From the NCBI GenBank assembly GCA_000320545.1, contig ADNK01002846.1:1-60252 (forward strand): 60,252 nt of DNA, read 5' to 3'. The first letter of the stretch is position 1. Every line of letters begins with the position of its first letter. A program made the position numbers and the translations under genes. Origin of the DNA: Bigelowiella natans CCMP2755. Its lineage: Eukaryota; Protista; Cercozoa. The notes below the pieces were generated by a model, which made no database searches, had not been told where the DNA came from, and saw only the letters and a list, made by a program, of their open reading frames with translations. Below, in pieces: positions 550 to 41,302 of this stretch.

Positions 550-824
550 CACTTGCAGCTTGAATGGTAGCTGTAGGAGAGGGAAAACATGAGGAATCAT
601 CCTGTACACGCGCTTTTCTGTCCCAGGTGGATTTGAAATACAACCTGGCCAAAAATTGGGCGGCGGCATACGCAGCGGAACGTGGTGAGCCTGGCCCGGT
701 GAGCTCTGTGCTGAATTCCCTGGGGCTTCGAGAACGATTCAATCAGGAGGCCCCCACGCCTGAGGACATGCTGAAGCGACCGAATGATGATGATGATGAC
801 GGTGATGACGCGATGTGGGCGTGA
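79..824 (+). CDS. 3' exons of an uncharacterised multi-exon gene entering from the left edge
   Basis: Coding-like segments about 79-163, 379-490 and 627-824, bounded by GT..AG introns containing (CT)n and (TAG)n tracts; ends ...DDAMWA-TGA. No recognisable domain. Confidence 0.5.
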
Positions 825-2289
825 TTGCAGCTCAGATTGCGGAAGCAATTGAACGTCACCATCATGAATCGAAACCATGAGACGAAATCACTGACTCAAG
901 CTGAAAAAGAAGCATGGATCGCTGCGCGCACTCATCACGACATCGACGACAAAACACGGATGCTGTGAAGTGCATGAAACACATCATTACACAGACACTC
1001 AACTTTGGCGCTGTGGGCCCGCTGCATTGCACAGCTGCGTAAAGACGGCCATTGAACAAGCATGATTTGATTGATCACATCGCCGTCTTGCAAACAGACA
1101 CAAAACAAGCGCTGTGGACGCTGCTTTGCATGGCTGCATTGGGGTGACCATTGAAAAGATTTGATCACTTCATTGCATCCGTCTCTCGCATGTGTGTGTT
1201 GAAACGTGGAGCATGCCCATTGACAATGCACGAACTGCACATTCAAAACTCAAAATTGTGCTGCTACCCTGGCACCGGCTAGCCGATCGGCTACACGCAA
1301 TTGCACAATGATGCACTTTGATCAGGATTCACACATCGCATGAGCTTGTAAATTCACGGATCTGTTGCATGATTAGTCAAATTTACAATGTTTCCCACAC
1401 TAAGCGATCCACAAAATGTTCAGAAGATGTAGCGCAATTGACCATGAAGATCAACATTGCTTTCTCAGCACTCGCTGACAGCGCATGCGCATGAGCCGGT
1501 GGATAGATCCAAAAGAATCGATCAATCAGAATCCTTCTTAGAGAATCTCAGCCGATGAAAGAAACTCATTACTTTTCTCATTGGACTGCGTGGAGAGTTT
1601 ACAGCGGAAGAGCGGCTCGATCTGGGCGACGTTATAGTCGACGAGCATCGCTCTTTAGCTACGATGAAGGGAACCTCAATCTTCAGGACGGGTATGTTCA
1701 CTGCGGTAACAGATGCCGATCTCTTGAACTGGTCACGTCGTTCGCCGCCTCTCCGTGGACTTCTTGCCTTCGTAGCTGAGAATCGCCTCGGCCGCACGAT
1801 GGCACCAGGAGAGGGCTTTGCGAGCTCAGGTCCACCCGCTGCCGTGCGAGGCACGCTTCTGGCAGTATTCGACGCACTGCGAAACCTCGTCGGGCTGAGC
1901 CCTCGCCGCCGTGATGATGAGGAGCGCCCTCTTGGCGAGATCTTTTCGCTGCTCAGGCGACGGCGTCGCTGAACTGGGCTTTCTATGACACTGTTCTCGC
2001 CCGATCCAGACCTGCTGTGAAGGGGCGGCGAGATGGCCGAGCCGGAGCTGCTTCGCCGCTGCCGGGTCATTGCGCTCGGGCTCCATTGGCCAGAGCCGCC
2101 GCGCGAGCTTTGCTTTCGCACTCCAGTCATCTGCTTCAGGATCTCCTTTTGTGTCTGCGACCTGGCATGACATCATGTAAATTCCACGTACACAGAGCAG
2201 TAAGAGCAAGGAGAGGGCTGCTGGCGCCCATTTTTTTTTAAAGACGGCTCTGCTCTTGCCGCCGCCTCATGCGTGCCGCTGACCTGCTC

Positions 2290-6159: not shown

Positions 6160-6598
6160 GTGCGATCGATCGATGGCGCAATGAGTTGCGCAGACATGCG
6201 CAGACAAGATTTCTCGCCTGCAATGGTGAGTGCTTTTAGATCTGGATACCTGCGCAGTGACAATATATATTATATATATAGTGTATTGCATGTCTATCAT
6301 CGTGTCATCAGCACATCTCATGACAAAATGGCCATCTCACGTGCATGAACTTGGCCATCACACAAATTGTGGCACAAGTAACAATACATGCTCGGATGTG
6401 GAGCGAAATGCACATGAAACATGCAATTTGATGATTGCATTTTGCAGCATGATGATGTTGTGACAATGCTGATGTGTTTGCATGATGACAATCAACCGAG
6501 CCACAGCCACAACGCAATTTCCTGAAGACAAGTTGACACAAGCTTGCAACAGACGTGGTTAAGTGCATCTGGCACAAGTACGACTAGCATTTGTACTT

Positions 6599-6960
6599 GG
6601 CATTGCACAAATTGCAGCTTGCCGCAAAAAGCGCGGCGTCGCGTGCGTGCAAACCAATGATTGCATTGAGCATGTGCGCACAGTCAGTTGCACGTGCGCA
6701 TCAGCTCGCGCGTGCACAGCTGCGCGCACTTTCTGATCGCGCGCATTTGCATTGCGCACGATGCACGTGTGCACACATCGTGCTGCGCGCGTTCCAATGA
6801 TGCATGCACGCACGTGTCTGCACGTCGTTTGTTGCGCATTTTGCCAATCAAACGCTCACGTTTTTCAATGCAAAAAACGATCGTGCGTTGCGTGTGTGAT
6901 GCAGCTGCACGAGTGCACGCACGCTTGCTTGTTGCGCACGTGCGTGCACGCGTGTGTGTG
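6599..6960 (+). repeat. Left terminal inverted repeat (first ~120 bp near-identical to right TIR; similarity with indels extends ~360 bp)
   Basis: Manual alignment to the reverse complement of about 10025-10376. Confidence 0.85.
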
Positions 6961-7161
6961 CGTGCACGTGTTCAACGTGCGCAGCCGTCACCAGTGCTTT
7001 GGCAGAGCCCGCTGCCTTGCTCTGTTTGCACTTTGAGCTGCCATGACAATTTGGTCGCCGTGCAGCGCGCACAATGCAAAAAGTGACGCTTTTTCAGCGG
7101 TGCATGCGATTGCATGTCAAAACGACAACTTGCAACAAGCAGCAGCAGCGACACTCCAGCA

Positions 7162-8021
7162 TCAAATTTCAGACTCGTCGCTGCTGCTGCTAGAAAGCAC
7201 CTTCTTCTCCCCGTCCCACACCGACTCTTCGAAAAAAAAAATGCCAATGTGCTGATTGGACTTGACCATTTCGTGTTGTTCAATGGTGGTTCCATCCGGA
7301 ACCCGCACATTGAACTCGTGCTGGGAGGGAGGCAGTTTCAGTTTTTTCAATGTTTCTTTGGCTCTGACTTGCTCAGAAGTCAGAGCCGCCACTTTCGTTG
7401 ATGAAGCCACCACGTCAGCTTTTTCCTTTGGTGGCTTTGTTTTCATTGTCACCCAATGCGAACGAACACGCAAGGTGATGTCGATCATGATGAAGCTCTG
7501 CAGGGCTTCACGTTGAGTTCCGCTGTGGAACCAGGCTAGCAGGTGCACCCGTGTCAAAGCAAAAGCAAAAACACAACGCACCTTCATCATCGAGTGGACT
7601 TTGTCCACCTCGAATTCACACGAAGCCCTGCAGAGCTTGTTGATTGACATCCACGTCCCCGAGTTGAGCTTGACTTCGAAGGGCGTGGGGCCGCGGAGCA
7701 GCGTCTGCTCCGCCAGGTCGCTCTCAGAGCGACCCATCTCCTCGTCTGCAACTGCGTCCGAGAGGTCATCACTGACCTCCGGATCGCATTGCCGTGCTCT
7801 CTTTCGAGACGGCGTTGAGGAGGAGGAAAGGCTGCTCGCGGGTTTGAGTCCCAGGGTCCGCGCTCGGCGCTTCACCTGGTTCCCGCGTTGGCCTTTCCTC
7901 GGCCAGAACTGAAGCAAGTTTTGGCCAGACAAGCCCAGGGCCGCTTCAGCTTGTCAGGAGGGATCGCACGGATCCCTCCTTTCAATTTGCGGTCCATCTC
8001 ATCCGTCCACTTTGACCCCAT
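7162..8021 (-). pseudogene. Harbinger accessory Myb/SANT-like DNA-binding protein, frameshifted
   Basis: MGSKWTDEMDRKLKGGIRAIPPDKLKRPWACLAKTC, then in another frame WPRKGQRGNQVKRRARTLGLK, giving the WT-x-E-x-D..L..W..LA..R-x-x-Q-x-x-R-R Myb pattern. ORF 7162-7932 (256 aa) contains no Tyr. Confidence 0.6.
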
Positions 8022-8672
8022 TGGACGGAAGGTGCAATTTTTGCGCGCGAGCTGTTGTCGCACTCGCAACGGCAAAAATTGTCCTGCGTGGGGTCACTTG
8101 CGACAAGGGACCGGGCCCTTGTCGCAAGGGAAAACACCCGCAGAAGCTAGGAGCACTCGAAAGTTGAGTTTCGAGAAGCTAGCTTCGGGTTGGATTCACG
8201 TCAAATCACCAGGATTGCAAGTTGCACGTGTGCAACCCGACTGGTGCTCACAGGCGCTTTGTCGCAACGACACAAAGCGTTTGTGCAACACTTCTGTCGG
8301 GAAAACATTGCAACATCCTGTTGATGTTTGTGACTCATCTCGACGATCCACGGAAAAGCTCGAAGCGCAAAAAAAGCTCGAGCACAGTGGGCCGTCGACA
8401 AAAGCTCGAAGCACACTTGACTTTGTCGGCGAGCTTTGGGGCCCCTGTTGGAGCTTCAAGCTCAAGCCACAAAAGACAGGTGCTTTGGGCCCTGTGGTGG
8501 CGGGAAACCCACCCCCGCCCGCCACAGCGCCCACATTGACCCCAAAGCTCGCGTGCGAAAAAAGCGCACTTTTCTGAAAGCGCAATGCGCTTCGCGCTTC
8601 GCGCTTTTTTTGGGCTTTTCGCCCAATCGAGCTTTTTCAAAATTGAAACGTGAACTCAGGCACAGGCTCCCC

Positions 8673-9986
8673 ATGAGCGTGCCCAAGTTTGCAACGTGCG
8701 TGGGAACCATTGTGACTTCCTCTCCTTCGTCTGTGAGTTTCACTTTGCTCACAGGAAGGAGGAGGAGAGAGAGGCCTGGGTGGGGCCATTCGAGAGCTGC
8801 TTCCATGAGTTCTCGCACCCAGCCTGGATCTCCTCCTTCGGATCAACCGTGGAGGAAGTCTAGAAGTGCAGCACGTGTGGGATGAATGCAGATGCGAAAC
8901 AGGGTTGTTGCGTGAAGATGTCCTCATCGGACTGCACTTTGTGTGGGCATGTCCGACCCAATGTCAAGGTGCAGCCCTGTGGAGGATGCATCGCAACACT
9001 TGTGAGTGCAAACGTTGGGTCCCCGTGATTGCATTGGGGGTGTCCACATGAAAGAAACAAAAGTGGAGAATGGAAAACATGATCGTGCAGATGCCAAAGG
9101 TCCCGCCTCCCACGTGACCCTGTGCGTCGACGCCACAGACGCGCCGATTGGCAAGCCTTCATCCAAGGCTGACCAACGGCGCTTCTGGACGTTCAAAAAC
9201 AGGAAGTTTGCCAAGAGGCACGTGGCGGCGGCATCTGTCGCCACGGGGGACCTCTGCTGGGTCAGCAAGGCATGCCCCGCTGCCACCGGTGACCTCCCCA
9301 TCGTTCGTGGGGAAGCCGGGTCAGGCGGGGAGCGACTCGACCTGCAGGTCGACTGGTTCGAGCGCACAGGTGGGGATGGTGCCCACAGGTGCAGGCAAGA
9401 CCCCAAGCATGTCGCTCCGCGGAGAAAACCGCGCAACAAACAAGTGTCTGCCGCCGACCGTGAGCACAACACGGAGCACGGCGGCACGCGTGCAATCGCA
9501 GAGAACGTGTTCTCCAGGGTCAAGTCCTGGGCGGTGATGACCTCGTGGAGGCATCACCGTGATCTTCACGACATTTCTGCTGGCCTGGTGTTCCAATTGA
9601 CCCAGGTAGGTGCAGAACGTCGTGAAGCTTCACGCTGATTGCGTTCGGCATTGTTTCCACAGGTCAAGAACGTTTTCAGACCTGTGAGGGCTGGTGTTCG
9701 CAACCAGCCCGGGACCAAGCGCAGCTGGGACGTGGCCCGGGCCACTGGCTCCGTGCCACGTGCAATTCCCGCTGCAAAGTCCAGGGCTGCACGCAGGACA
9801 TTGGTCTTGCAAAAGCAGCCCAAGCGGAAAAAGGGTCGTGCCTCCTCGAAGCACGCTGCAGCGCAGGATGCTGCCATGCGTGAATGGGAGGCAAAGATCT
9901 ACGCAATGCACGCAAGCGATGCAAGGACAGACAGAGCAAGGCAGCGAGCTCTGTCAAAGCATGCATCGCGTGCCAGCACGTCGTAG
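8673..9986 (+). pseudogene. DDE transposase (DDE_Tnp_4 / Harbinger-IS5-like), frameshifted and hypermutated
   Basis: Motifs LIGLHFVWA(C)PT, LCVDATDAPI (D1), GDLCWVSKA(C)P..GDL, GGDGA(H) (D2), RKPR, RAI(A)ENVFSRVKSW (E). Probable introns at about 8696-8754 and 9606-9662; frameshifts at 8860-8867 and near 9010-9050. Confidence 0.85.
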
Positions 9987-10024
9987 TTTGTCAACACGCA
10001 CGTGCAGCAGACACGCAAACGCGA

Positions 10025-10376
10025 CTGGTGCATGCACGCACGTGCGCAACACGCAAGCACATGCGTGCACGCGTGCAGCTGCATTGCACGCAATGCACGA
10101 TCGTTTTTTCATCGAAAAACGTGAGCGTTTGATTGCAAAAATGCGCAACAAACGACGTGCAGACACGTGCGTGCACGCACAATTGGAACGCGTGAGCGTG
10201 CAGTGCAGTGCACGTGCGCACGTGCACCATGACTGCACGTCCACGCAGCACGATGTGTGCACACGTGCATCGCGCGCGCACGTGCAACTGACTGTGCGCA
10301 CATGCTCAATGCAATCATTGGTTTGCACGCACGCGACGCCGCGCTTTTTGCGGCAAGCTGCAATTTGTACAATGCC
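10025..10376 (-). repeat. Right terminal inverted repeat
   Basis: Reverse complement matches 6599-6960; retains GTAC (10367-10370) where the left TIR has GCAC. Confidence 0.85.
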
Positions 10377-10997
10377 AAATGAGAATTAAATGCAAACAGA
10401 GGCGACATCACAACACCGTGAGATTAGATGGAAGCCACACTGCGCAAGCAAGCTTAGCGTGACAAACATGCACTCAGATTGAGAACACCGCCCTCGAACG
10501 AGGTAAAGAGAATTGTGTTGACACATGTTCAACACACATGTGCATGAATGTAATGCAGATATAATCATTTATCAGGGTTTTTTAATTAGATCAAATTGTA
10601 TTTATTTGAACTTGTGCTACGCTTCTCTACGGTTATAGTCAACACGAGTTCCCGTCCACAATCCTCGTTCCTCATGAATGATATCTACGTTACACAACTC
10701 AATACAACTCATAAGTATGCAGACAGCCTCCTGCCTGCGCTACTACTATCAACCTGCATTCTACACGCGCCTCCCAGCTCAAAACTAACATCTCATGATG
10801 AAGCACATGCAGTGTGTCTACAGACACAGTGTGTGCCATGTGCACATTGTGTCTGTTGTCACAACGCATGTTTTATTCCAGCAACTAGAAGTGAAGAGAA
10901 TGTTTCCGTGGCCTTCCTTCAGCGTCATCAGAGATGAACGTGGAAGGTCATTGCATCTCCATGCGTCGTTTTACTTTGGCAGAGTGCTTGTGACTTC

Positions 10998-13900
10998 TCA
11001 GCTATTTTCATACCAGTCTGCGTAGAGGGTTCCATCGATGCAAATCTCAATGACATTGCCCGTGTGCGGAATTTCAACAGCAGGCATTTGTTCTCGCTTT
11101 TTCATCACTTTCTCAGCTTCTCTGACGAGATCGAAGAATCTTGGAGAATGTTTCTTTTTCTTCTGGCTTTTGAATGCTGACAACAATGACTCGGTGAACA
11201 GTCCGTTCTGAGTATCTCCATTTTGAGCTACATCACCTTGACATGTACATAGCATACACAAGTCAAAAATATCCTTCGGCCCCAAGAATCTTTTGTGTTA
11301 CCAAAGATCAATTAATTCACCTGGCTGACAAGCGTAGAGTGTCATGCATCCTGTTAACTCTTCTTTTGCGATCTTCAAACCTCCTCTCGTCAATGAACGA
11401 TGCTTACTTACCATCGAGCGTGGCAGTCCTAATACAACAGTAGATGATGGTTGTGCTGTTTGAGTGGGGGTTGATGATTCATGCATCGGAATACCTGATG
11501 CATTACGACAACAGTCTAGCAACAGAATCTTCACGTTTGCTTCATCCAAGCCTTCGATTATACGTTTGGTACTTAGTTCTCTCCTTTTCAACTCCCTGAA
11601 ACAAGGAAATGGAGTTATTTGAATGATAATCGAAAGGGCAATACACTCTGTACCTTTCATGCTTGTAGTCGTTATCAATACCCAGTAGATAGTTATCGAA
11701 CGCGTCCTGATTCCTATTTGGTGTTTGGACACCATGGCCGGCGAAAAATACAACTGCTAGAGATTCGCCTTTATGTTGGCAGAGAGCATCTTCAAATTCT
11801 TCAATAGCTTTCTTCATACCACCACTTGTCAGGTTTTCATGATAGAAGACCTTGTAGCCGTACTCAGATCCAAATTTCTCCTTCATGGCTTGTGCATCGT
11901 TGACAGGGTTTGATCCCAATGGGCTAGTACTGTAGTTTCCATTACCGATAATCAATGCAAACTTGTGGGTAATGACAGGCTTCGGCTTCTTGCTAGGCCT
12001 CACCACTGTGGCCTGTTTTGTTTCCTTGATCGTGGTCTTGTTCATTTTCTTGATTGCCCTTTCGAACCTTTTACGGTGCGGTGTTTTCTTGAAGTATTTC
12101 TCAATTTCCTCACTTCCCTGAGATGTTATTAGAATAGGAAGAATGAATGCCACATATTATATCCAGAACTAACCTACATACTCAGACCATAAATATCACC
12201 ATGGCGCTCAAGTCCTCCACGTATTCGTAACCACCATCACGCAACGTTTTGGCGTATTCAGAGAGACGCGCTATTTTGAGAAACTGTTCAAATTCGTCAT
12301 TTTCCGGCCCCTTGCTTTCCTTATCTTGCTTTGTCAATCCGGATTTTATCTGTAAAAAGAACAGCATATTTGTGATTCTGATTAGTTGCAGTTTCTGAAG
12401 GTAACGTAATAATGACCTTCTTACTGAGACTAGAAGTGGGAGGATCTTCAACTGTAGGTGCGTTCGTTCTCTTTCGATTAGACTTTGGTGGCATTGACTT
12501 TGTTGTAAGTACGACCTCCTTCTTAGAGTTTTGCTTGGATGAACACTTGGGGCTTGTTTTCCGTATCGGTTCGTCTTCATCATCGGAAGAATCCGACTCC
12601 ATTGATGCACATTTAGGCTGTCGGATCAAACATTGATGGTCTTAGATTTGCATTGAAAATCGATCGTTACAACGATTCCTGAAGCAAGATATATTGATAT
12701 CTAACACCACAGCACGATGACTTATTCAGATTCAGACATGCACCTTTCCTGGGGAAGAAGATGCTGCTTTATCAAAAATCATTTGTCCTAGATCTCCCTT
12801 CTTCTTTCCAGAGTATCCCTTAATCTTATGTTTATTGCAACAATCTTTCAGGGAAGGAACTGTTACCGCACGTATTGCCTCTTTCTTCAAAGTCTGCACC
12901 AGTTCATCTCTTTTCTCAATCATATCACAGGAGAGATCTCGAAATCGCGCATTAGCAAAGTCTTTGATCTCGGCAATAGTTCCATTGGAGCACAACCTTG
13001 CAAAAGTCCAAAATACTTCGCCTGAAAACGCTTGGGAAGTGTTGATTTTGGTTTTTTTGGTTTTTTTGGTTTCGGCATTCATCTTTGCTGATGCTATCTT
13101 TTCAGATGCGATCTTTTTGTCGCGAAGATACTCCGTTATACTCTCATGACCACGTATTTCTGCCATGTCTATTGGCATCAGACCTGGATGACGAACCAAA
13201 ATGCAACACACACATGCACTCATCAACACAACCACCCTTCTTACTACCAGTAAACTAGTATTACGGCCACTACTAATATCAATGCTCAGTGTACCAGTCC
13301 CTGCTACTCACTACTCAATACTGATACAACTACTACTCCTCTTACTCACTACTCAAAACTATTACTAATAACAATATCACTACTGCTACCAACAACAATT
13401 ACCATCACCCACACAACACTAAAACTACTGCCTAAACGATAGCAATACTGCAACTGCCACCCACCATAATTGTTCTTCGTCTCGATGTTTGCCTTCATAC
13501 CAACCAGGTACTTGACGATCTCCAAATGGCCATTATAAGATCCCCAACCCAACGGCGTCCGACCTGGTGGTATGCGACACCATTTTAGACGCAAAAACAA
13601 CAATGACAAATCTATGCAATATCAACAACCATCCTCAAACCAACATCTTATTAATTCTTTTGTAAAGCTGATATTACTACTACTACTAATATCAATGCTC
13701 AGTGTACCAGTTCCTGCTACTCACTACTCAATACTGATACAATTCCTACTCCCCCTACTCACTACTCAAAACTATTACTAATAACAATATCACTACTGCT
13801 ACCAACAACAATTACCATCACCCACACAACACTAAAACTACTGCCTAAACGATAGCAATACTGCAGCTGCCACCCACCATAATTGTCCTTCGTCTCGATG

Positions 13901-16024
13901 TTTGCCTTCATACCAACCAGGTACTTGACGATCTCCAAATGACCCTTCATAAGTCCCACAAACAACGGCGTATTACCTGGTGGTATGCGACACCATTTTA
14001 GACGCAAAAACAACAATGACACATGTATGCAATATCAACAACCATCCTCAAACCAACATCTAATTAATTCTTTTGTAAAGCTGATATTACTACTACTACT
14101 AATATCAATGCTCAGTGTACCAGTTCCTGCTACTCACTACGCAATACTGATACAATTCCTACTCCCCCTACTCACTACTCAAAACTATTACTAATAACAA
14201 TATCACTACTGCTACCAACAACAATTACCATCACCCACACAACACTAAAACTACTGCCTAAACGATAGCAATACTGCAGCTGCTACCCACCGTGAATGTC
14301 CTTCGCCTCGATGTTTGCCTTCATACCAACAAGGTACTTGACGATCTCCAAATGGCCATTATAAGATCCCCAACCCAACGGCGTCCGACCTGGTGGTATG
14401 CGACACCATTTTAGACGCAAAAACAACAATGACAAATCTATGCAATATCAACAACCATCCTCAAACCAACATCTAATTGATTTTTGTAACGCTGATATTA
14501 CTACTACTACTAATATCAATGCTCAGTGTACCAGTTCCTGCTACTCACTACTCAATACTGATACAACTCTTACTCCTCTTACTCACTACTCAAAACTATT
14601 ACTAATACCAATATCACTACTGCTACCAACAACAATTACCATCACCCACCCAACACTAAAACTACTGCCTAAACAATAGCAATACTGCAGCTGCTATCCA
14701 CCGTTATTGTCCTTCGCCTCGATGTTTGCCTTCATACCAACCAGGTACTTGACGATCTCAAAATTGCCATTCATAAGTCCCATAAACAACGGCGTATTAC
14801 CTGGTGGTAAGCGACACCATTTTAGACGCAAAAACAACAATGACAAATCTATGCAATATCAACAACCATCCTCAAACCAACTTCTTATTAATTCTTTTGT
14901 AAAGCTGATATTACTACTACTACTAATATCAATGCTCAGTGTACCAGTTCCTGCTACTCACTACTCAATACTGATACAATTCCTACTCCCCCTACTCACT
15001 ACTCAAAACTATTACTAATAACAATATCACTACTGCTACCAACAACAATTACCATCACCCACACAACACTAAAACTACTGCCTAAACGCTAGCAATACTG
15101 CAACTGCCACCCACCATAACTGTCCTTCGCCTCGATGTTTGCCTTCATACCAACCAGGTACTTGATGGTCTCAAATTTGCCATTAAAAGATCCCCAACCC
15201 AACGGCGTATGACCTGGTGGTATGCGACACCATTTTAGACGCACAAACAACAATGACACATGTATGCAATATCAACAACCATCCTCAAACCAACATCTAA
15301 TTAATTCTTTTGTAACACTGATATTACTACTACTACTAATATCAATGCTCAGTGTACCAGTCCCCGCTACTCACCTACTCGCTCCGCAATACTGATACAA
15401 TTCCTACTCCTCTTACTCACTACTCAAAACTATTACTAATACCAATATCACTACTGCTACCAACAACAATTACCATCACTCATCCAACACTAAAACTACT
15501 GCCTAAACGATAGCAATACTGCAGCTGCTACCCACCGTGAATGTCCTTCGCCTCGATGTTTGCCTTCATACCAACCAGGTACTTGACGATCTCCAAATGA
15601 CCCTCCATAGATCCTAAAATCAACGGCGTCCGACCTGGTGGTATGCGACACCATTTTAGACGCAAAAACAACAATGACAAATCTATGCAATATCAACAAC
15701 CATCCTCAAACCAACATCTTATTAATTCTTTTGTAAAGCTGATATTACTACTACTACTAATATCAATGCTCAGTGTACCAGTTCCTGCTACTCACTACGC
15801 AATACTGATACAACTCCTACTCCCCCATCGCTGTTGCTCATGTGACCACTCTCTACTCAACAATCTTACATGCTTCTGATGCCAATGCTACTTACGACTG
15901 CTGCTTACTCACCCTGCTCATTCCTCGCCTCAATATTTGCCTTTTCCTCTATTAAACGTTTTAGAAGAGGAAGCTCATTTGGGTTCGCTGCGGCTTTGAA
16001 GATGTTACTATTGTTTGATCCCAT
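10998..16024 (-). CDS. Multi-exon ankyrin-repeat + SAM-like + caspase-family (peptidase C14, p20-like) protein
   Basis: Exon 1 (15913-16024) starts MGSNNS. Six 99-bp ankyrin exons follow, then a capping repeat GLMPIDMAEIRGH, a SAM-like segment (FEQFLKIARLSEYAKTLRDGGYEYVEDL..PHRKRFERAI), and a caspase fold FALIIGNGNY..NPVNDA..VFFAGHG..NYLLGID..ILLLDCCRN..TLYACQPG..NGLFTESLL with the His/Cys dyad intact. Confidence 0.8.
13270..15825 (-). repeat. Tandem array of about six ~413-bp exon+intron units, one ankyrin repeat each
   Basis: Phase-1 99-bp exons at 13465-13563, 13878-13976, 14291-14389, 14702-14800, 15115-15213 and 15536-15634; intervening introns are nearly identical. Confidence 0.95.
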
Positions 16025-18299: not shown

Positions 18300-21200
18300 T
18301 AGAGCCAAGACCAGCTAGCCTAGGCGATGCCATGCATCAATGACGATCGCATTGTCGCATGTTGTTGTTGTCGCAACTCGTGTCATGCACTTGTTCGCGT
18401 TGCACATTGTTCCAAATTTGCAGGTGATGGCAGCGTGCTAAGAAGCATCTAGCTAGCATGTGTCAGCGTCATTGCGACGCAACTAGCAGAAGAAAGGCTC
18501 AGCTTTTTGGCTAGCAGGACATCTCAGAAATGTGTTTGGTTCTCACCAAGGGCAGAGGGCGCTTGTGGCATGGTCCATTCTTCTGAGGGCAGTCACTCGA
18601 GGACAATGAGGGCAAGCCATCGTTGGAACTTGAACCTCATCGTGATGATGGACACAGCAATGCACAATGTGCATCGTGTGCACAGTGCATTGCACGTCCA
18701 TCATGAGTGCACAATGCAATTTCATGGACTGCCTCGTGTGCTGCACGCTCAACAACATCAATCCATTCATTTCGATTTTGGATCATCCATGTGCATGAAG
18801 CTAGGCTCTTCATCATGCATGCACAAACAACAAGCTTCTTGCATGCACGAGGTGTGCACAATGATGTCATTCGTCCCATCGTGTGATTGCACCGCCCGCC
18901 AAACGTGTGCACTCAATCAGGTCGTGCATGACCCTGCGCGTGCATTGTGCAAATTCATTCGTGTGATTGATCATGCTCAAAGTGACTCTTGACGTGTTTG
19001 ACACACGTGACACCATCATCCACGTGAACTGTGCCTGACAGCGCTCAATGAGCTTTCACTTGCAACAATTGTGTGGCATGCACGTTGTGTCTTTTGTTGA
19101 ATGCCAAACCAAGAGAGTTCAAAACGGTGGCATTTGAACAAAGTGCAGATTGACACGTCTGCCACGTGCACTCCACCGCACCGTGCTGCTTGGACAGATG
19201 CGGTCCATTGTCAGGGCATCGTTTCATGCGCTTCTTCTTCTCTTTCTCTTCACTTTGAAGGGCACGATGCTCCTTGCATCTCGTGAACTCTCTGAACCCA
19301 CTGCCTGATCTGCTTCTTTGACAACCTCTTGTTTTCTTCTCTTCGTGATTGTCTTTCTCTTCACTTTGAAGGGCACGATGCTCCTTGCACCTCGTGAACT
19401 CTCTGAACCCACTGCCTGATCTGCTTCTTTGATGATGTTCATGAAAAGCGATTCAAATTTTCTCATCACCCTTTCAATGTTTTGAACGTTGAGAAGAACA
19501 AGTTCAAGTCTGCTCTGTGCCTGCAAAACAGGTTCCGTGAATTTGTCCACGTCCACTGTCGTTCCACGACCACACTTCCCCTTTGCTTGGTTGATGAGAT
19601 CCAACAAATCCAACAAGTGCAATTCAGCTTTTCCCGTCTCCAACTTGACAATGCGGATGAGATCACCTTTGAGTCTCTTCAGTTTCTGCGAAAGCGGCGA
19701 TTTCGTGTCCCTTTGATTTGCTTCCGTGTTGTCATGTGCTTGTCTCCTGGTGAGGGGGGGGGGTTGAGTTGTGTTCCCTCTTGTGGAAACACCAACGACA
19801 ACATCCCACAACAATTCTGAAAACATCGAGAAAACATCGTGGGAAATTGCAGTCCAAAAAATCGACTCATTGCCTCAAACCCCCAATTCGAGCTGCCTGC
19901 AGAGTCCTCAAAATTGACAAGTGTGGTCGCTCCAAAACAACTTTCTCGTCATCTGATCCACAAGGAAATGACATTGGCTCACAGACCCACCTGACATCAG
20001 TCCACAATCGCTGTGGATCGTTCATGCATCTCCCGCAGCCATCAGGAGGAGAGCTGATGTCGGAGCTTCGAGCCATCTGCAGAATCCTCAAAGTTGACAA
20101 GTGTGGTCGCTCCAAAACAATTTTCTCGTTGTCCAATCCACAAGGAAATGACATTGGCTCACAGACCCACCTGACATCGGTCCACAATCGCTGTGGATCG
20201 TTCACACGTCTCCCGTGGCCATCAGGAGGAGAGCTGATGTCGGAGCTTCGAGCTGTCTGCAGAACCCTCAAAATTGACAAGTGTGGTCGCTCCAAAGTGA
20301 TTTTCTCGTCACTTGATCCACAAGGAAGTGACATTGGCTTGCAGCAACGTCGCCATTGTGACAACAGACGTGCATGGACGTGCACGTCCCTGTGCGTGCA
20401 GACGTCCACGACGTGTGCACATCACGCACTTCACGTGCACCTGCAGCTGCACGTGTGCCAAGTGATGGCGCTCGTGTGTGCATGCATGCATCCATGTGTG
20501 CCATGTGTTGCCTGCAGCAGCAATGGCTTGACTGCATGACAACGCTGATGACACATCGCAAAGTGGCAACGCCTTCCAAACAAAAGTCTCATGCTGACAT
20601 TGCGTTCTCTTGCATTCGCCCTGCGCTGTGTGCCTTCAGCGTGGAAAACACACTGCGTGCACGATGTCGCTTTTGATGAAACGTGACACACGAAGACCAC
20701 TTGTTCTTGATCATTGGTGCACACAGCGATTCCGCACTTTTCAGGTGCACGCTTTGATCTTTTGCTCCTTCCAGACGTGTTGTGGTTTGCAGTGCGTGCT
20801 CGCAGACGGTCACGGATGGTCTGATCGTGGTCACGGGACTGCTGTTGCTCTTCCTCTGCCTGCTGCTGCTGCTGCTCTTGATCGTGGTTGCGAGGCTGCT
20901 GTTGCTCTTTGCATTCCTCTGCCTGCTGCTGCTGCTGCTGCTGTTGCTCTTCCCCTGCCTGCTGCTGCTGCACAAAGAATGCCACAAGCATTTTGAAACA
21001 TGGTCAAACAATTTTTGGGGACTCTGCCACAAGTTGTTTCCCAAACCCAACAACAACGTGTTCCCTGAACCCAATGCAGATGATGATTCCAATGTCAAAC
21101 AATGATGAAGCATCTTTGAATTCCCACAAATCGAAAGCATGATCACGTTGAACACTGTGCACACGTCAAAAAACATGTGAAGACATTGAAGTTTGCAAAA

Positions 21201-21496
21201 TGCATTTGCGATGTGGCAATGACAGAGAATGCATCGATCTCGTGCAAAGATGTTGAATGGGGCGCAGACGCATTCAATTGATTCCATCCGCGTGTGACTG
21301 CCAATCGTTGCATGCATTGCAAACGGCAAAATGACACAACAACTTGGAACATGGAGAGGACATGTTTGGTGCATGTGAAGAAACATGGAACCTTTGCTCC
21401 GACCCAAATCTTGAGCCATGCTCATGACAGACACAGCAATGCACAATGCACATTGTGCATGGCAGTGCGCATGCTGACGCATCAGAACACATCGTG
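18300..21496. other. TpA-free hypermutated tract containing decayed ORFs and internal duplications (origin unidentified)
   Basis: No TA dinucleotide found by eye from 18805 to 21496; the few left in 18302-18804 are CTAG except one CTAA. Confidence 0.85.
19887..20340. repeat. 180-bp tandem repeat, about 2.5 copies
   Basis: Copies start at 19887, 20067 and 20247; they differ only by transitions. Confidence 0.95.
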
Positions 21497-40066: not shown

Positions 40067-41302
40067 AATTGCTGTTTATTTGTAGTAGTCCTCAGTGACC
40101 CTGTGTGTTATCTGGTCATCTGTGCTTATTTGGTCTTGTTGATATATCAGCTCCCTGTGCCGCCGAAGCATCACCCTTGATTGCCAAATTTATGTTGGAA
40201 TCTTCTATCTAGCTATCTTGACTTCACCCCGCTCATCATGACAACATCCAGTTACATACCACCACATGCACAAAAGTGGCAAGCTTTCTCCTTGATTTTC
40301 CTGTAGTTGCGAGGTGACAAATAAACGTGAGACTTATGCAACTGCGTGGAAGCTCCACTTCATTTAAGCTGGCTTCACTTTTCGTTGGTGGACATAGCAC
40401 CTGATAATATAAGATGGCCTCCAAAATTATCTGCCTTACTTGATGATCGACATGATTTATGGCGCAGGCTAACAGCAGGCAATGTCAATAATTAAATATA
40501 ATGATAAAGCTAGTATCGTAAAGCGCTGCAGCTGAATCACTCGTACACAGCTCTATCTAGAGCTAGACAGCTAGATAGGTACGCTAGTACGGTACACGGA
40601 CATACATGTATAGCAGAAAGCACCATAGCTAATAATAGACACAGTAATATCATAATATCATATATAGTATATATATGGTATTACATGTCTATAATAAGTA
40701 TCATGTCTATAATGCTATCTAGCTATTATACTATATCGCTATATCTACTAGCATAGCATAGCTACGATACATGATGCTAGCATGGCTAGATGGCTCGATC
40801 AATACGTACACAATGCCTATATAACTAGCTAACTAACCAGATCAAGAGATACGTATCGTCTACCACAGCTAGACAGCGCCTTGCTAGCTTGACTAGTTCT
40901 AGAGTTGGCTATATATCTAATACATTCAGCACTGACCGTGTTGGTACGTGATGGTTATGTACGCATTACCTGCGCAATCTAGCAACATACATAACGCGCT
41001 AGGCGTGCGTGGCGCAGCATTGCTATCATCATTCCCGCAGCAGCTGGCACATATTAACATCGATCAAGATTATTGAATCAGTGATAAAGTTGTCTAGATG
41101 TACACACATGGCGGCAAAAGGGCAGCAAATTGGCCTGATGGCAACTGCCGTCGATCATTTCGATACCAGTAATTCCTCAGTAAGACAGCGTATTGTTACA
41201 GCGTATCTCTGGGTGGCAGAAAATGAAACCCGATTTTGTGCCGCATCCACCATGCAGTGTCGATCAATAAATGACAAGCCTTACCTCACCAAGCTCTCAG
41301 GC

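Follow-up and report, generated by a model that had tools for sequence, protein, structure and literature searches.

A PIF/Harbinger-like DNA transposon copy at positions 6597-10378 of a 60,252-nt stretch of the Bigelowiella natans genome (contig ADNK01002846.1; the whole stretch is called the window below, and positions without a contig name refer to it) has been stripped of its TA dinucleotides, and very probably it was saturated by a TpA-specific A:T-to-G:C hypermutation that B. natans directs at inserted foreign DNA. The phenomenon itself is already known, and its discovery belongs to a preprint of 2026 (Mettrop et al., bioRxiv 10.64898/2026.01.13.699255), which measured exactly such a process in this organism; the supposition in the preliminary description of this locus that no natural system of the kind had been described is therefore overtaken. 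Its central claim, that a process acting on the chromosome turns TpA into TpG or CpA on both strands of selected mobile loci until these are saturated, is borne out by the sister copies and the multi-copy alignments presented here.

The tract that is poor in TA extends from 6599 to 10376 and retains nine of these dinucleotides (at 7191, 7537, 8148, 8180, 8861, 9607, 9900, 9984 and 10368), the number counted in the preliminary description over about 3780 bp, where base composition predicts 178 (observed/expected ratio, O/E, of 0.05; the expected range is about 118-178). The O/E of the whole window is 0.66, and at this window-typical value the Poisson probability of finding nine or fewer TA is about 1e-38. 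In bins of 500 bp the TA O/E lies between 0.00 and 0.16 across 6501-10500 and between 0.5 and 0.8 in the flanks. The products expected from a change of TA, namely CA and TG, are both raised within the tract (O/E 1.54 and 1.48, respectively), but CG, which had also been described as strongly enriched, stands at 1.01 and hence only slightly above the window mean of 0.87.

The edges of the TA loss track the element to within a few bp. Outside the element, TA reappears at a distance of 3 bp on the left (6594) and of 9 bp on the right (10387), and in four mutated copies TA persists 1-8 bp outside the terminus. Averaged over 18 termini, there are 2.2-2.7 TA per 100 bp up to 100 bp beyond the terminus, as against 0.4-0.7 per 100 bp at a distance of 25-200 bp inside and 1.6 in the 25 bp inside that adjoin the terminus. 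The sequence of the element is reproduced over many stretches by exact-match contigs from independent public sequencing runs of 2011, 2021 and 2025, and the variant letters in these contigs are the paired CA/TG differences of paralogous copies.

We assign the tract to a PIF/Harbinger-like cut-and-paste element because it combines terminal inverted repeats with a match to the Pfam family DDE_Tnp_4. The left inverted repeat (6597-7033, plus strand) is about 440 bp long, and over its outermost 103 nt it shows 99% complementarity to the right arm (9923-10378, minus strand); as had been noted before, the right arm keeps a GTAC, with its TA at 10368, where the left arm reads GCAC. The relic transposase exon is a 210-aa open frame on the plus strand (9006-9638) that matches DDE_Tnp_4 with an E value of 1.8e-11 and 44.4 bits (cut-off 24.8) over profile positions 1-135 of 158. 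On the minus strand, a 256-aa open frame (7162-7932) has no Pfam match, and could be either the second Harbinger open reading frame or the default open frame of a TA-free sequence; the Pfam search of this opposite-strand frame gave no match to a Myb/SANT-like second-frame domain, in a sequence that is heavily mutated. Neither of the two frames contains a Tyr codon, which agrees with the preliminary description and is an automatic consequence of the absence of TA.

Searches of the B. natans assembly (91.4 Mb) located two further full copies (C2101:30143-33827 and C2540:186579-190152), which share 88-90% identity with the window element and are equally poor in TA, together with many terminal fragments. 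Beside the conserved core GCATTGCAC, the copies with the fewest mutations have a triplet TTA or TAA; elsewhere the triplet is mostly TTG, TCA, GTG, CTG, GCA or ACA, with one GCT and one GAA. When the triplets at both ends of a single element were compared for a TWA target-site duplication, no direct repeat could be read. At 9601-9612 the motif CAG/GTAGGT retains its TA in the window element and in both of its sisters, which were mutated independently, and CCACAG/GTCAAG follows about 70 bp downstream; together they look like the borders of an intron in the transposase gene, the donor TA of which would lie in a refractory G-TA-G context.

The direction of change can be read from a related Harbinger family on contig C2929, which shows 69% identity to positions 8932-9952 of the window. 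The contig carries two members of this family, one of which (C2929:11740-14723) bears TA, and these represent separate insertions, because their similarity does not extend past the end of the element and each has flanks of its own. Over 3010 aligned bp, the 73 TA of the first copy correspond in the second to CA (41), TG (29), GA (1) and TA (2), with no CG at all. Apart from these sites the two copies are about 99.7% identical, and six of their nine other substitutions are again A>G or T>C. The preliminary description had allowed for intact copies that were just as free of TA and for changes that started from CG; we find instead a relative that bears TA, an undepleted CG and changes that start from TA.

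The same comparison bears on the protein that these elements encode. The TA-bearing copy reads GDGAY, PKYVTP, WVYPT and RVIVE, and in its TA-free sister and the window element His, Cys or Ala stand at the corresponding positions. The proposal that His and Cys in the relic transposase replace former Tyr was correct in three of its five examples (GDGAY to GDGAH, PKYV to PKHV or PKCV, and WVYPT to WACPT in the comparison with the C2929 relative), but not for SKA-C-P and DRE-H-N, where the relative has His and Ser-Asn. The proposed origin of the motif RAI-A-EN by a change of GTA to GCA also proved sound, with RVIVE (GTA) in the relative and RAIAE in the window element. Against DDE_Tnp_4 the related C2929 copy scores 50.7 bits, and for the C-terminal half of the profile the TA-bearing copy reaches 31.9 bits and the TA-free one 30.7, the frame of the former being split by a frameshift in a run of G. 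In the TA-bearing copy (region C2929:12207-13230), one extra G in a run of 13-14 G separates frames of 260 aa and 124 aa, and the TA-free sister has a continuous frame of 352 aa; this additional G may be genuine or may stem from an error in sequencing the homopolymer.

A second tract of the window tells the same story for a different type of sequence. This tract (18513-21496, 2984 bp) is a member of a numerous repeat family in which no transposase can be recognised, and has one TA left, within a CTAG at 18802. Copies of this family that bear TA are found on C3191, C3189 and C356, those on C3191 and C3189 with 25-26 TA in 368 bp, and partly mutated and TA-free copies coexist with them. C3189:11162-12141 and C3191:67332-68198 are examples of the TA-bearing state. 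The TATATATATTATATATAT stretch of the unmutated copies appears in each mutated copy as a different mixture of TG, CA and an occasional CG. In 13 non-overlapping pairs of a TA-bearing and a TA-free copy, 228 TA became TG in 106 cases, CA in 82 and CG in 8, with 2 retained and 30 otherwise changed, and per strand, A>G in this family reached a frequency of 0.46 where the A follows a T, compared with 0.16 where it follows a C and 0.08 where it follows an A or G.

Differences among the mutated copies themselves carry further information. The window element and its two sisters display 135 variable pyrimidine-purine dinucleotide columns, 70 of which oppose CA to TG; three independent saturations of about 180 ancestral TA predict that about three quarters of the sites are variable, which is close to what is observed. 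Within the second tract lie three tandem units of 180 bp (19887-20426). At all of the 16 positions that distinguish unit 1 from unit 2 the change is a transition, and five double differences of CA versus TG are among them. These CA-versus-TG differences between adjacent units indicate that the hits followed the duplication, and hence that they fell on chromosomal DNA. Taken together, the copy comparisons point to TA as the ancestral state, to copies that were hit independently of each other and to both strands being hit about equally.

Each site receives a single hit, and the adenine that is left in the resulting TG/CA follows a C and is nearly immune. Indeed, CG was the outcome at none of 70 sites in the C2929 pair and at 8 of 228 in the second family, and this near-absence implies a strict need for a 5' T (or for a 3' A, if the process is directed at T). 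The order of CA and TG along the 13 copies is as random as in shuffled sequences (runs tests, z from -1.1 to 1.5), and no strand-coordinated tracts were found along the 13 copy pairs in which we looked for them. The proportions of CA to TG, 41:29 in the C2929 pair and 82:106 in the second family, show no significant bias. A random and balanced order of this kind speaks against a mechanism that is polar with transcription or processive along a single strand, and also against a route through RNA or cDNA. The preference for the 3' neighbour is weak, with TAC favoured over TAA and TAT (55:31, P = 0.013), the -2 and +1 positions being inseparable at a palindromic dinucleotide.

The rate of the process can be compared with that measured directly. 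In 15 mutation-accumulation lines of B. natans kept in asexual culture, Mettrop et al. (bioRxiv 10.64898/2026.01.13.699255; January 2026, version April 2026) recorded 302 new mutations. An integrated giant-virus genome of 186 kb and a virophage together account for 231 of them, and 230 of the 231 were A>G or T>C, all on TpA. These arose at about 6e-7 per site per generation, 1000-fold over background, and only in some of the lines, and the targets included a single-copy silent provirus. In the C2929 pair there are 3.2 hits per TA site, and substitutions of other kinds amount to 0.003 per base; the resulting ratio of 500-1500 agrees with the roughly 1000-fold excess of the preprint. From the data given there (211 mutations, 6169 TpA, 3132 generations) we derive a rate of about 1.1e-5 per TpA per generation and a TpA half-life of about 6e4 generations, and the 3-9 background substitutions of the C2929 pair imply 1.5-4.6 million generations. 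So long a time is more than enough for saturation, and a separate burst mode need not be assumed.

Sequence context modulates how readily a TA is lost. Inside TA-free tracts we counted 91 survivors, of which 37% lie in CTAG (background 7%, a 5.2-fold excess) and 25% in CTAC or GTAG (1.9-fold), and contexts that contain ATA are 3- to 12-fold under-represented. The window element has five CTAG survivors, three at ancestral sites and two that came with later insertions of 8 bp. The ancestral sites survive in either two or all three of the full copies, which were mutated independently, and C2101 has converted two of its ancestral CTAG to CCAG, which means that CTAG is slow rather than immune. Both 8-bp insertions are absent from both sisters in the three-copy alignment, and each contains one surviving TA: CAGG-CTAG-CAGG at 7532-7543, to which we refer as a CTAG scar, and AAGT-CTAG-AAGT at 8856-8867, which causes a frameshift upstream of the DDE exon. 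To judge from their form, these NNNN-CTAG-NNNN insertions look like footprints of a separate process of insertion or excision with a 4-bp duplication. The scar at 7532 probably postdates the local loss of TA, because the sisters have TAGG at the place of its duplicated CAGG. New DNA thus makes up part of the CTAG excess, and pure protection of CTAG, which we considered as an explanation of all survivors, was rejected in part, with two of the five survivors being later insertions and two of three ancestral sites changed in C2101.

Each of the window's three TA-poor tracts is a repeat, and the preliminary description had spoken of a "reverse-RIP", after the repeat-induced point mutation (RIP) of fungi. 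As a statement about the trigger, this name does not fit. It is not repetition that is sensed: one of two near-identical insertions on C2929 was spared, and three tandem arrays (413 bp x 6, 285 bp x 2 and 111 bp x 3) retain TA at a normal level. The largest of these (13269-15826), which we used as a control, consists of 6.2 copies of the 413-bp unit with 92% matches between copies and a TA O/E of 0.9-1.2; this array also has a strong GC skew of about -0.45. A TA-rich terminal fragment of the second family (6260-6300) sits about 300 bp to the left of the transposon and matches the start of the unmutated family, with more than 70 matches in the genome, and the fact that it has remained unmutated, together with the single-copy nature of the main target in the preprint, likewise argues against repetition as the trigger.

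The ends of the element have a history of their own. In 15 termini, which represent 11 loci, the outer 50 nt or so of the inverted ends are one TA-free and nearly identical sequence, and two variants of the arm are each found at more than one locus. The shared TA-free terminal sequence indicates that the ends lost their TA before these copies were inserted and that the family moved on afterwards. The locus also shows that cut-and-paste transposons, besides viruses, are driven to complete loss of TA, and that a family can continue to move with TA-free ends.

The evidence laid out above shows that TA is changed to TG or CA on DNA that is already part of the chromosome, and in each copy independently. 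A site is hit once and, being no longer TA, is then spared, and the strand that is struck does not depend on the neighbouring sites. The chemistry may be a deamination of adenine to inosine in a 5'-T context. Targeting would follow a heritable state of the individual copy, namely silencing, possibly guided by small RNA, and not repetition; the non-coding ends would have lost TA early, with the family remaining mobile afterwards. By analogy, targeting copy by copy with sharp edges along a whole element may resemble the small-RNA-directed silencing of single transposon copies in plants. One can go further and propose that a heritable guide acting in cis, either a small RNA or a chromatin state, brings in a DNA base editor that is specific for TpA and symmetric between the two strands, which would amount to a natural guided A:T-to-G:C editor from an enzyme family yet to be recognised; we offer this as a tentative and somewhat doubtful extension. 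The order of contexts under this proposal, ATA being best and CTAG worst, does not obviously match the housekeeping ADAT2 considered in the preprint.

Several points weigh against the directed hypermutation of the window element. No de novo mutation was seen at the locus, and action in situ rests on the comparison of copies. The TG/CA pattern common to the outer 50 nt or so and the shared arm types mean that part of the TA loss was inherited from before insertion. The deaminase census of the genome is ordinary: the search that the preliminary description had proposed did recover one locus of the ADAT1/ADAR type (C2414:14438-15741) and six of the cytidine deaminase fold (C980:65.3 kb, C570:97.1 kb, C3623:3.0 kb, C3286:4.2 kb, C1679:97 kb and C3588:86 kb; families PF02137, PF00383 and PF14437 were used), but no dedicated enzyme and no expanded or unusual family stands out among them. 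The deaminase family OTT_1508 gave no match, a weak negative given that the control genomes gave none either. Finally, A-directed and T-directed chemistry are indistinguishable at a palindromic dinucleotide.

This last point leads to an alternative in which the targeting is the same but the chemistry is that of thymine, the T of TpA being modified or oxidised (for example to a 5-formyluracil-like base), pairing with G and yielding T>C. Because TA is self-complementary, T>C before A looks the same in our data as A>G after T, and the rule of one hit per site and the lack of strand bias suit either chemistry. Adenine deaminases of the TadA/ADAT/ADAR type prefer a 5' U or T, and this preference and the weak preference for TAC are compatible with adenine deamination; T-directed chemistry is equally compatible. 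What makes the thymine route unlikely in our view is that the 5' preference is an established property of adenine deaminases, a point that the preprint argues too, and that the TAC bias (55:31) fits a TadA-like enzyme. The genome also gave no match to the Tet_JBP family, although this too is a weak negative because the control genomes gave none. A dedicated mutator may also be dispensed with altogether, if a labile epigenetic mark on TpA in silenced DNA decays slowly, as the TpA analogue of CpG decay. Partly mutated copies (C356, C273 and C2929:9449-9643) show that the loss is gradual, strand-coordinated bursts are absent and at the rate of the preprint a copy is saturated in about 3e5 generations, all of which would suit such decay. 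To our knowledge, however, no TpA-specific DNA mark is known, and the elevation of 500-1500-fold is far above the 10-50-fold elevation of CpG decay. The process is, moreover, active in only some of the mutation-accumulation lines (bioRxiv 10.64898/2026.01.13.699255), and we regard the decay of a mark as somewhat less probable still than thymine chemistry.

Explanations that need no mutation of TA in place fare worse. A family that is intrinsically free of TA, either because a TA-free master was amplified or because selection removed the TA, would account for the single TA-free sequence at the outer ends and for the two arm variants common to several loci. It would not account for internal sites that are CA in one copy and TG in another, for a relative with 73 TA that include the conserved Tyr codons, or for the same loss in unrelated repeat families, and it is thus very improbable; the copy-specific CA/TG differences and the TA-bearing relative rule out a TA-free master as the main cause. 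Ordinary CpG decay, from CG to TG or CA, could in principle produce CA-versus-TG differences between copies if the ancestor had CG, but it is excluded by a CG content that is not depleted (O/E 1.01, against 0.05 for TA) and by the existence of TA-bearing ancestors, and the change of TA to TG or CA has been seen directly (bioRxiv 10.64898/2026.01.13.699255). An artefact of assembly or sequencing is at odds with the identical sequence in the runs of 2011, 2021 and 2025; we give CpG decay and artefact a negligible probability.

The saturating hypermutation that we favour bears the same signature as the process in the preprint, which acts on TpA alone, yields TpG or CpA, is about 1000-fold elevated and local, and spares the neighbouring DNA. 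The difference is one of stage and substrate, as the preprint caught ongoing mutation in two viral insertions that still have thousands of TA, and here a cut-and-paste transposon is seen in the saturated end state. Mettrop et al. also list 324 TpA-depleted coding sequences, among which domains of DDE endonucleases and of reverse transcriptases are enriched, as well as 124 clusters with the same depletion, and propose an ADAT2-like adenine deaminase; their text contains nothing on Harbinger elements, comparison at the level of copies, edges, CG outcomes, strand coordination or extended context (bioRxiv 10.64898/2026.01.13.699255). Our literature search found no further paper on such a process. 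The present locus adds natural controls: two sisters on a single contig of which only one is mutated, limits that follow the element to within a few bp, and sites that are hit once and without coordination between strands. It adds as well that CTAG is relatively spared and that repeats as such are untargeted.

Among other known systems, the RIP of Neurospora and other fungi is similar in being a transition mutator that is specific for a dinucleotide, acts on both strands of chromosomal mobile DNA and has fairly sharp limits. Its direction, from CpA to TpA, is the opposite of what we observe. RIP senses duplication and mutates both copies before meiosis, whereas here one near-identical copy and the tandem arrays are spared, and the B. 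natans process hits a single-copy provirus and runs in asexual lines (bioRxiv 10.64898/2026.01.13.699255). The ADAR, ADAT and TadA enzymes, including the laboratory adenine base editors, share the conversion of A to I, which is read as G, and the preference for 5' U or T, and the weak TAC preference recalls the UACG substrate of TadA; their natural substrates are RNA, however, and here neither strand bias nor transcription polarity is seen. APOBEC3 is likewise a host mutator that acts against mobile and viral DNA, but it changes C to U with a strong strand bias on single-stranded replication intermediates, in contrast to the strand-symmetric A:T>G:C changes of an integrated cut-and-paste element. 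A natural A:T-to-G:C mutator of double-stranded chromosomal DNA that is confined to one dinucleotide and to selected loci would be the mirror image of fungal RIP and a counterpart of the laboratory adenine base editors. To identify its enzyme and the signal that targets it would be of value for the study of genome defence, and perhaps also for the design of editing tools.

Some further observations concern the locus of the element. A short contig in the runs of 2011, 2021 and 2025 links position 6591 straight to 10380, with CACAG between, at depths of 8.4, 55 and 5.6, compared with 9.4, 79-90 and 4.1 for the flank contigs, and no high-identity paralogue of the left flank was found in the assembly. 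The junction could be an empty-site allele, that is, a heterozygous or polymorphic insertion, or it could be an excision product; its letters do not match a simple 3-bp duplication. RNA over the element is almost nil, with 12 reads in about 6% of one run, which are too few for any statement beyond there being no sign of expression. To the right of the element by about 180 bp, RNA reads (region 10489-10600) have loose ends of oligo-T at 10562, and these reads suggest the polyadenylated 3' end of a minus-strand transcript.

The third TA-poor tract of the window (670-1264) has two TA in 595 bp and is part of a high-copy repeat, for which the search of the assembly returned 823 first-look candidates. 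Across the 184 kb of sequence examined, 55.6 kb is TA-free, a figure that is biased because the loci were chosen by homology. Tracts with no TA include C1193:129786-132992 (3207 bp) and C1512:5204-8528 (3325 bp). The C1193 copy has CACG or CGTG in place of many CATG, a hint of secondary activity on CpA once no TA is left, in line with the A>G frequency after C being twice that after A or G (0.16 versus 0.08). The opposite extreme of the window is the intergenic bin 40501-41000, in which 500 bp contain 84 TA (O/E 1.81).

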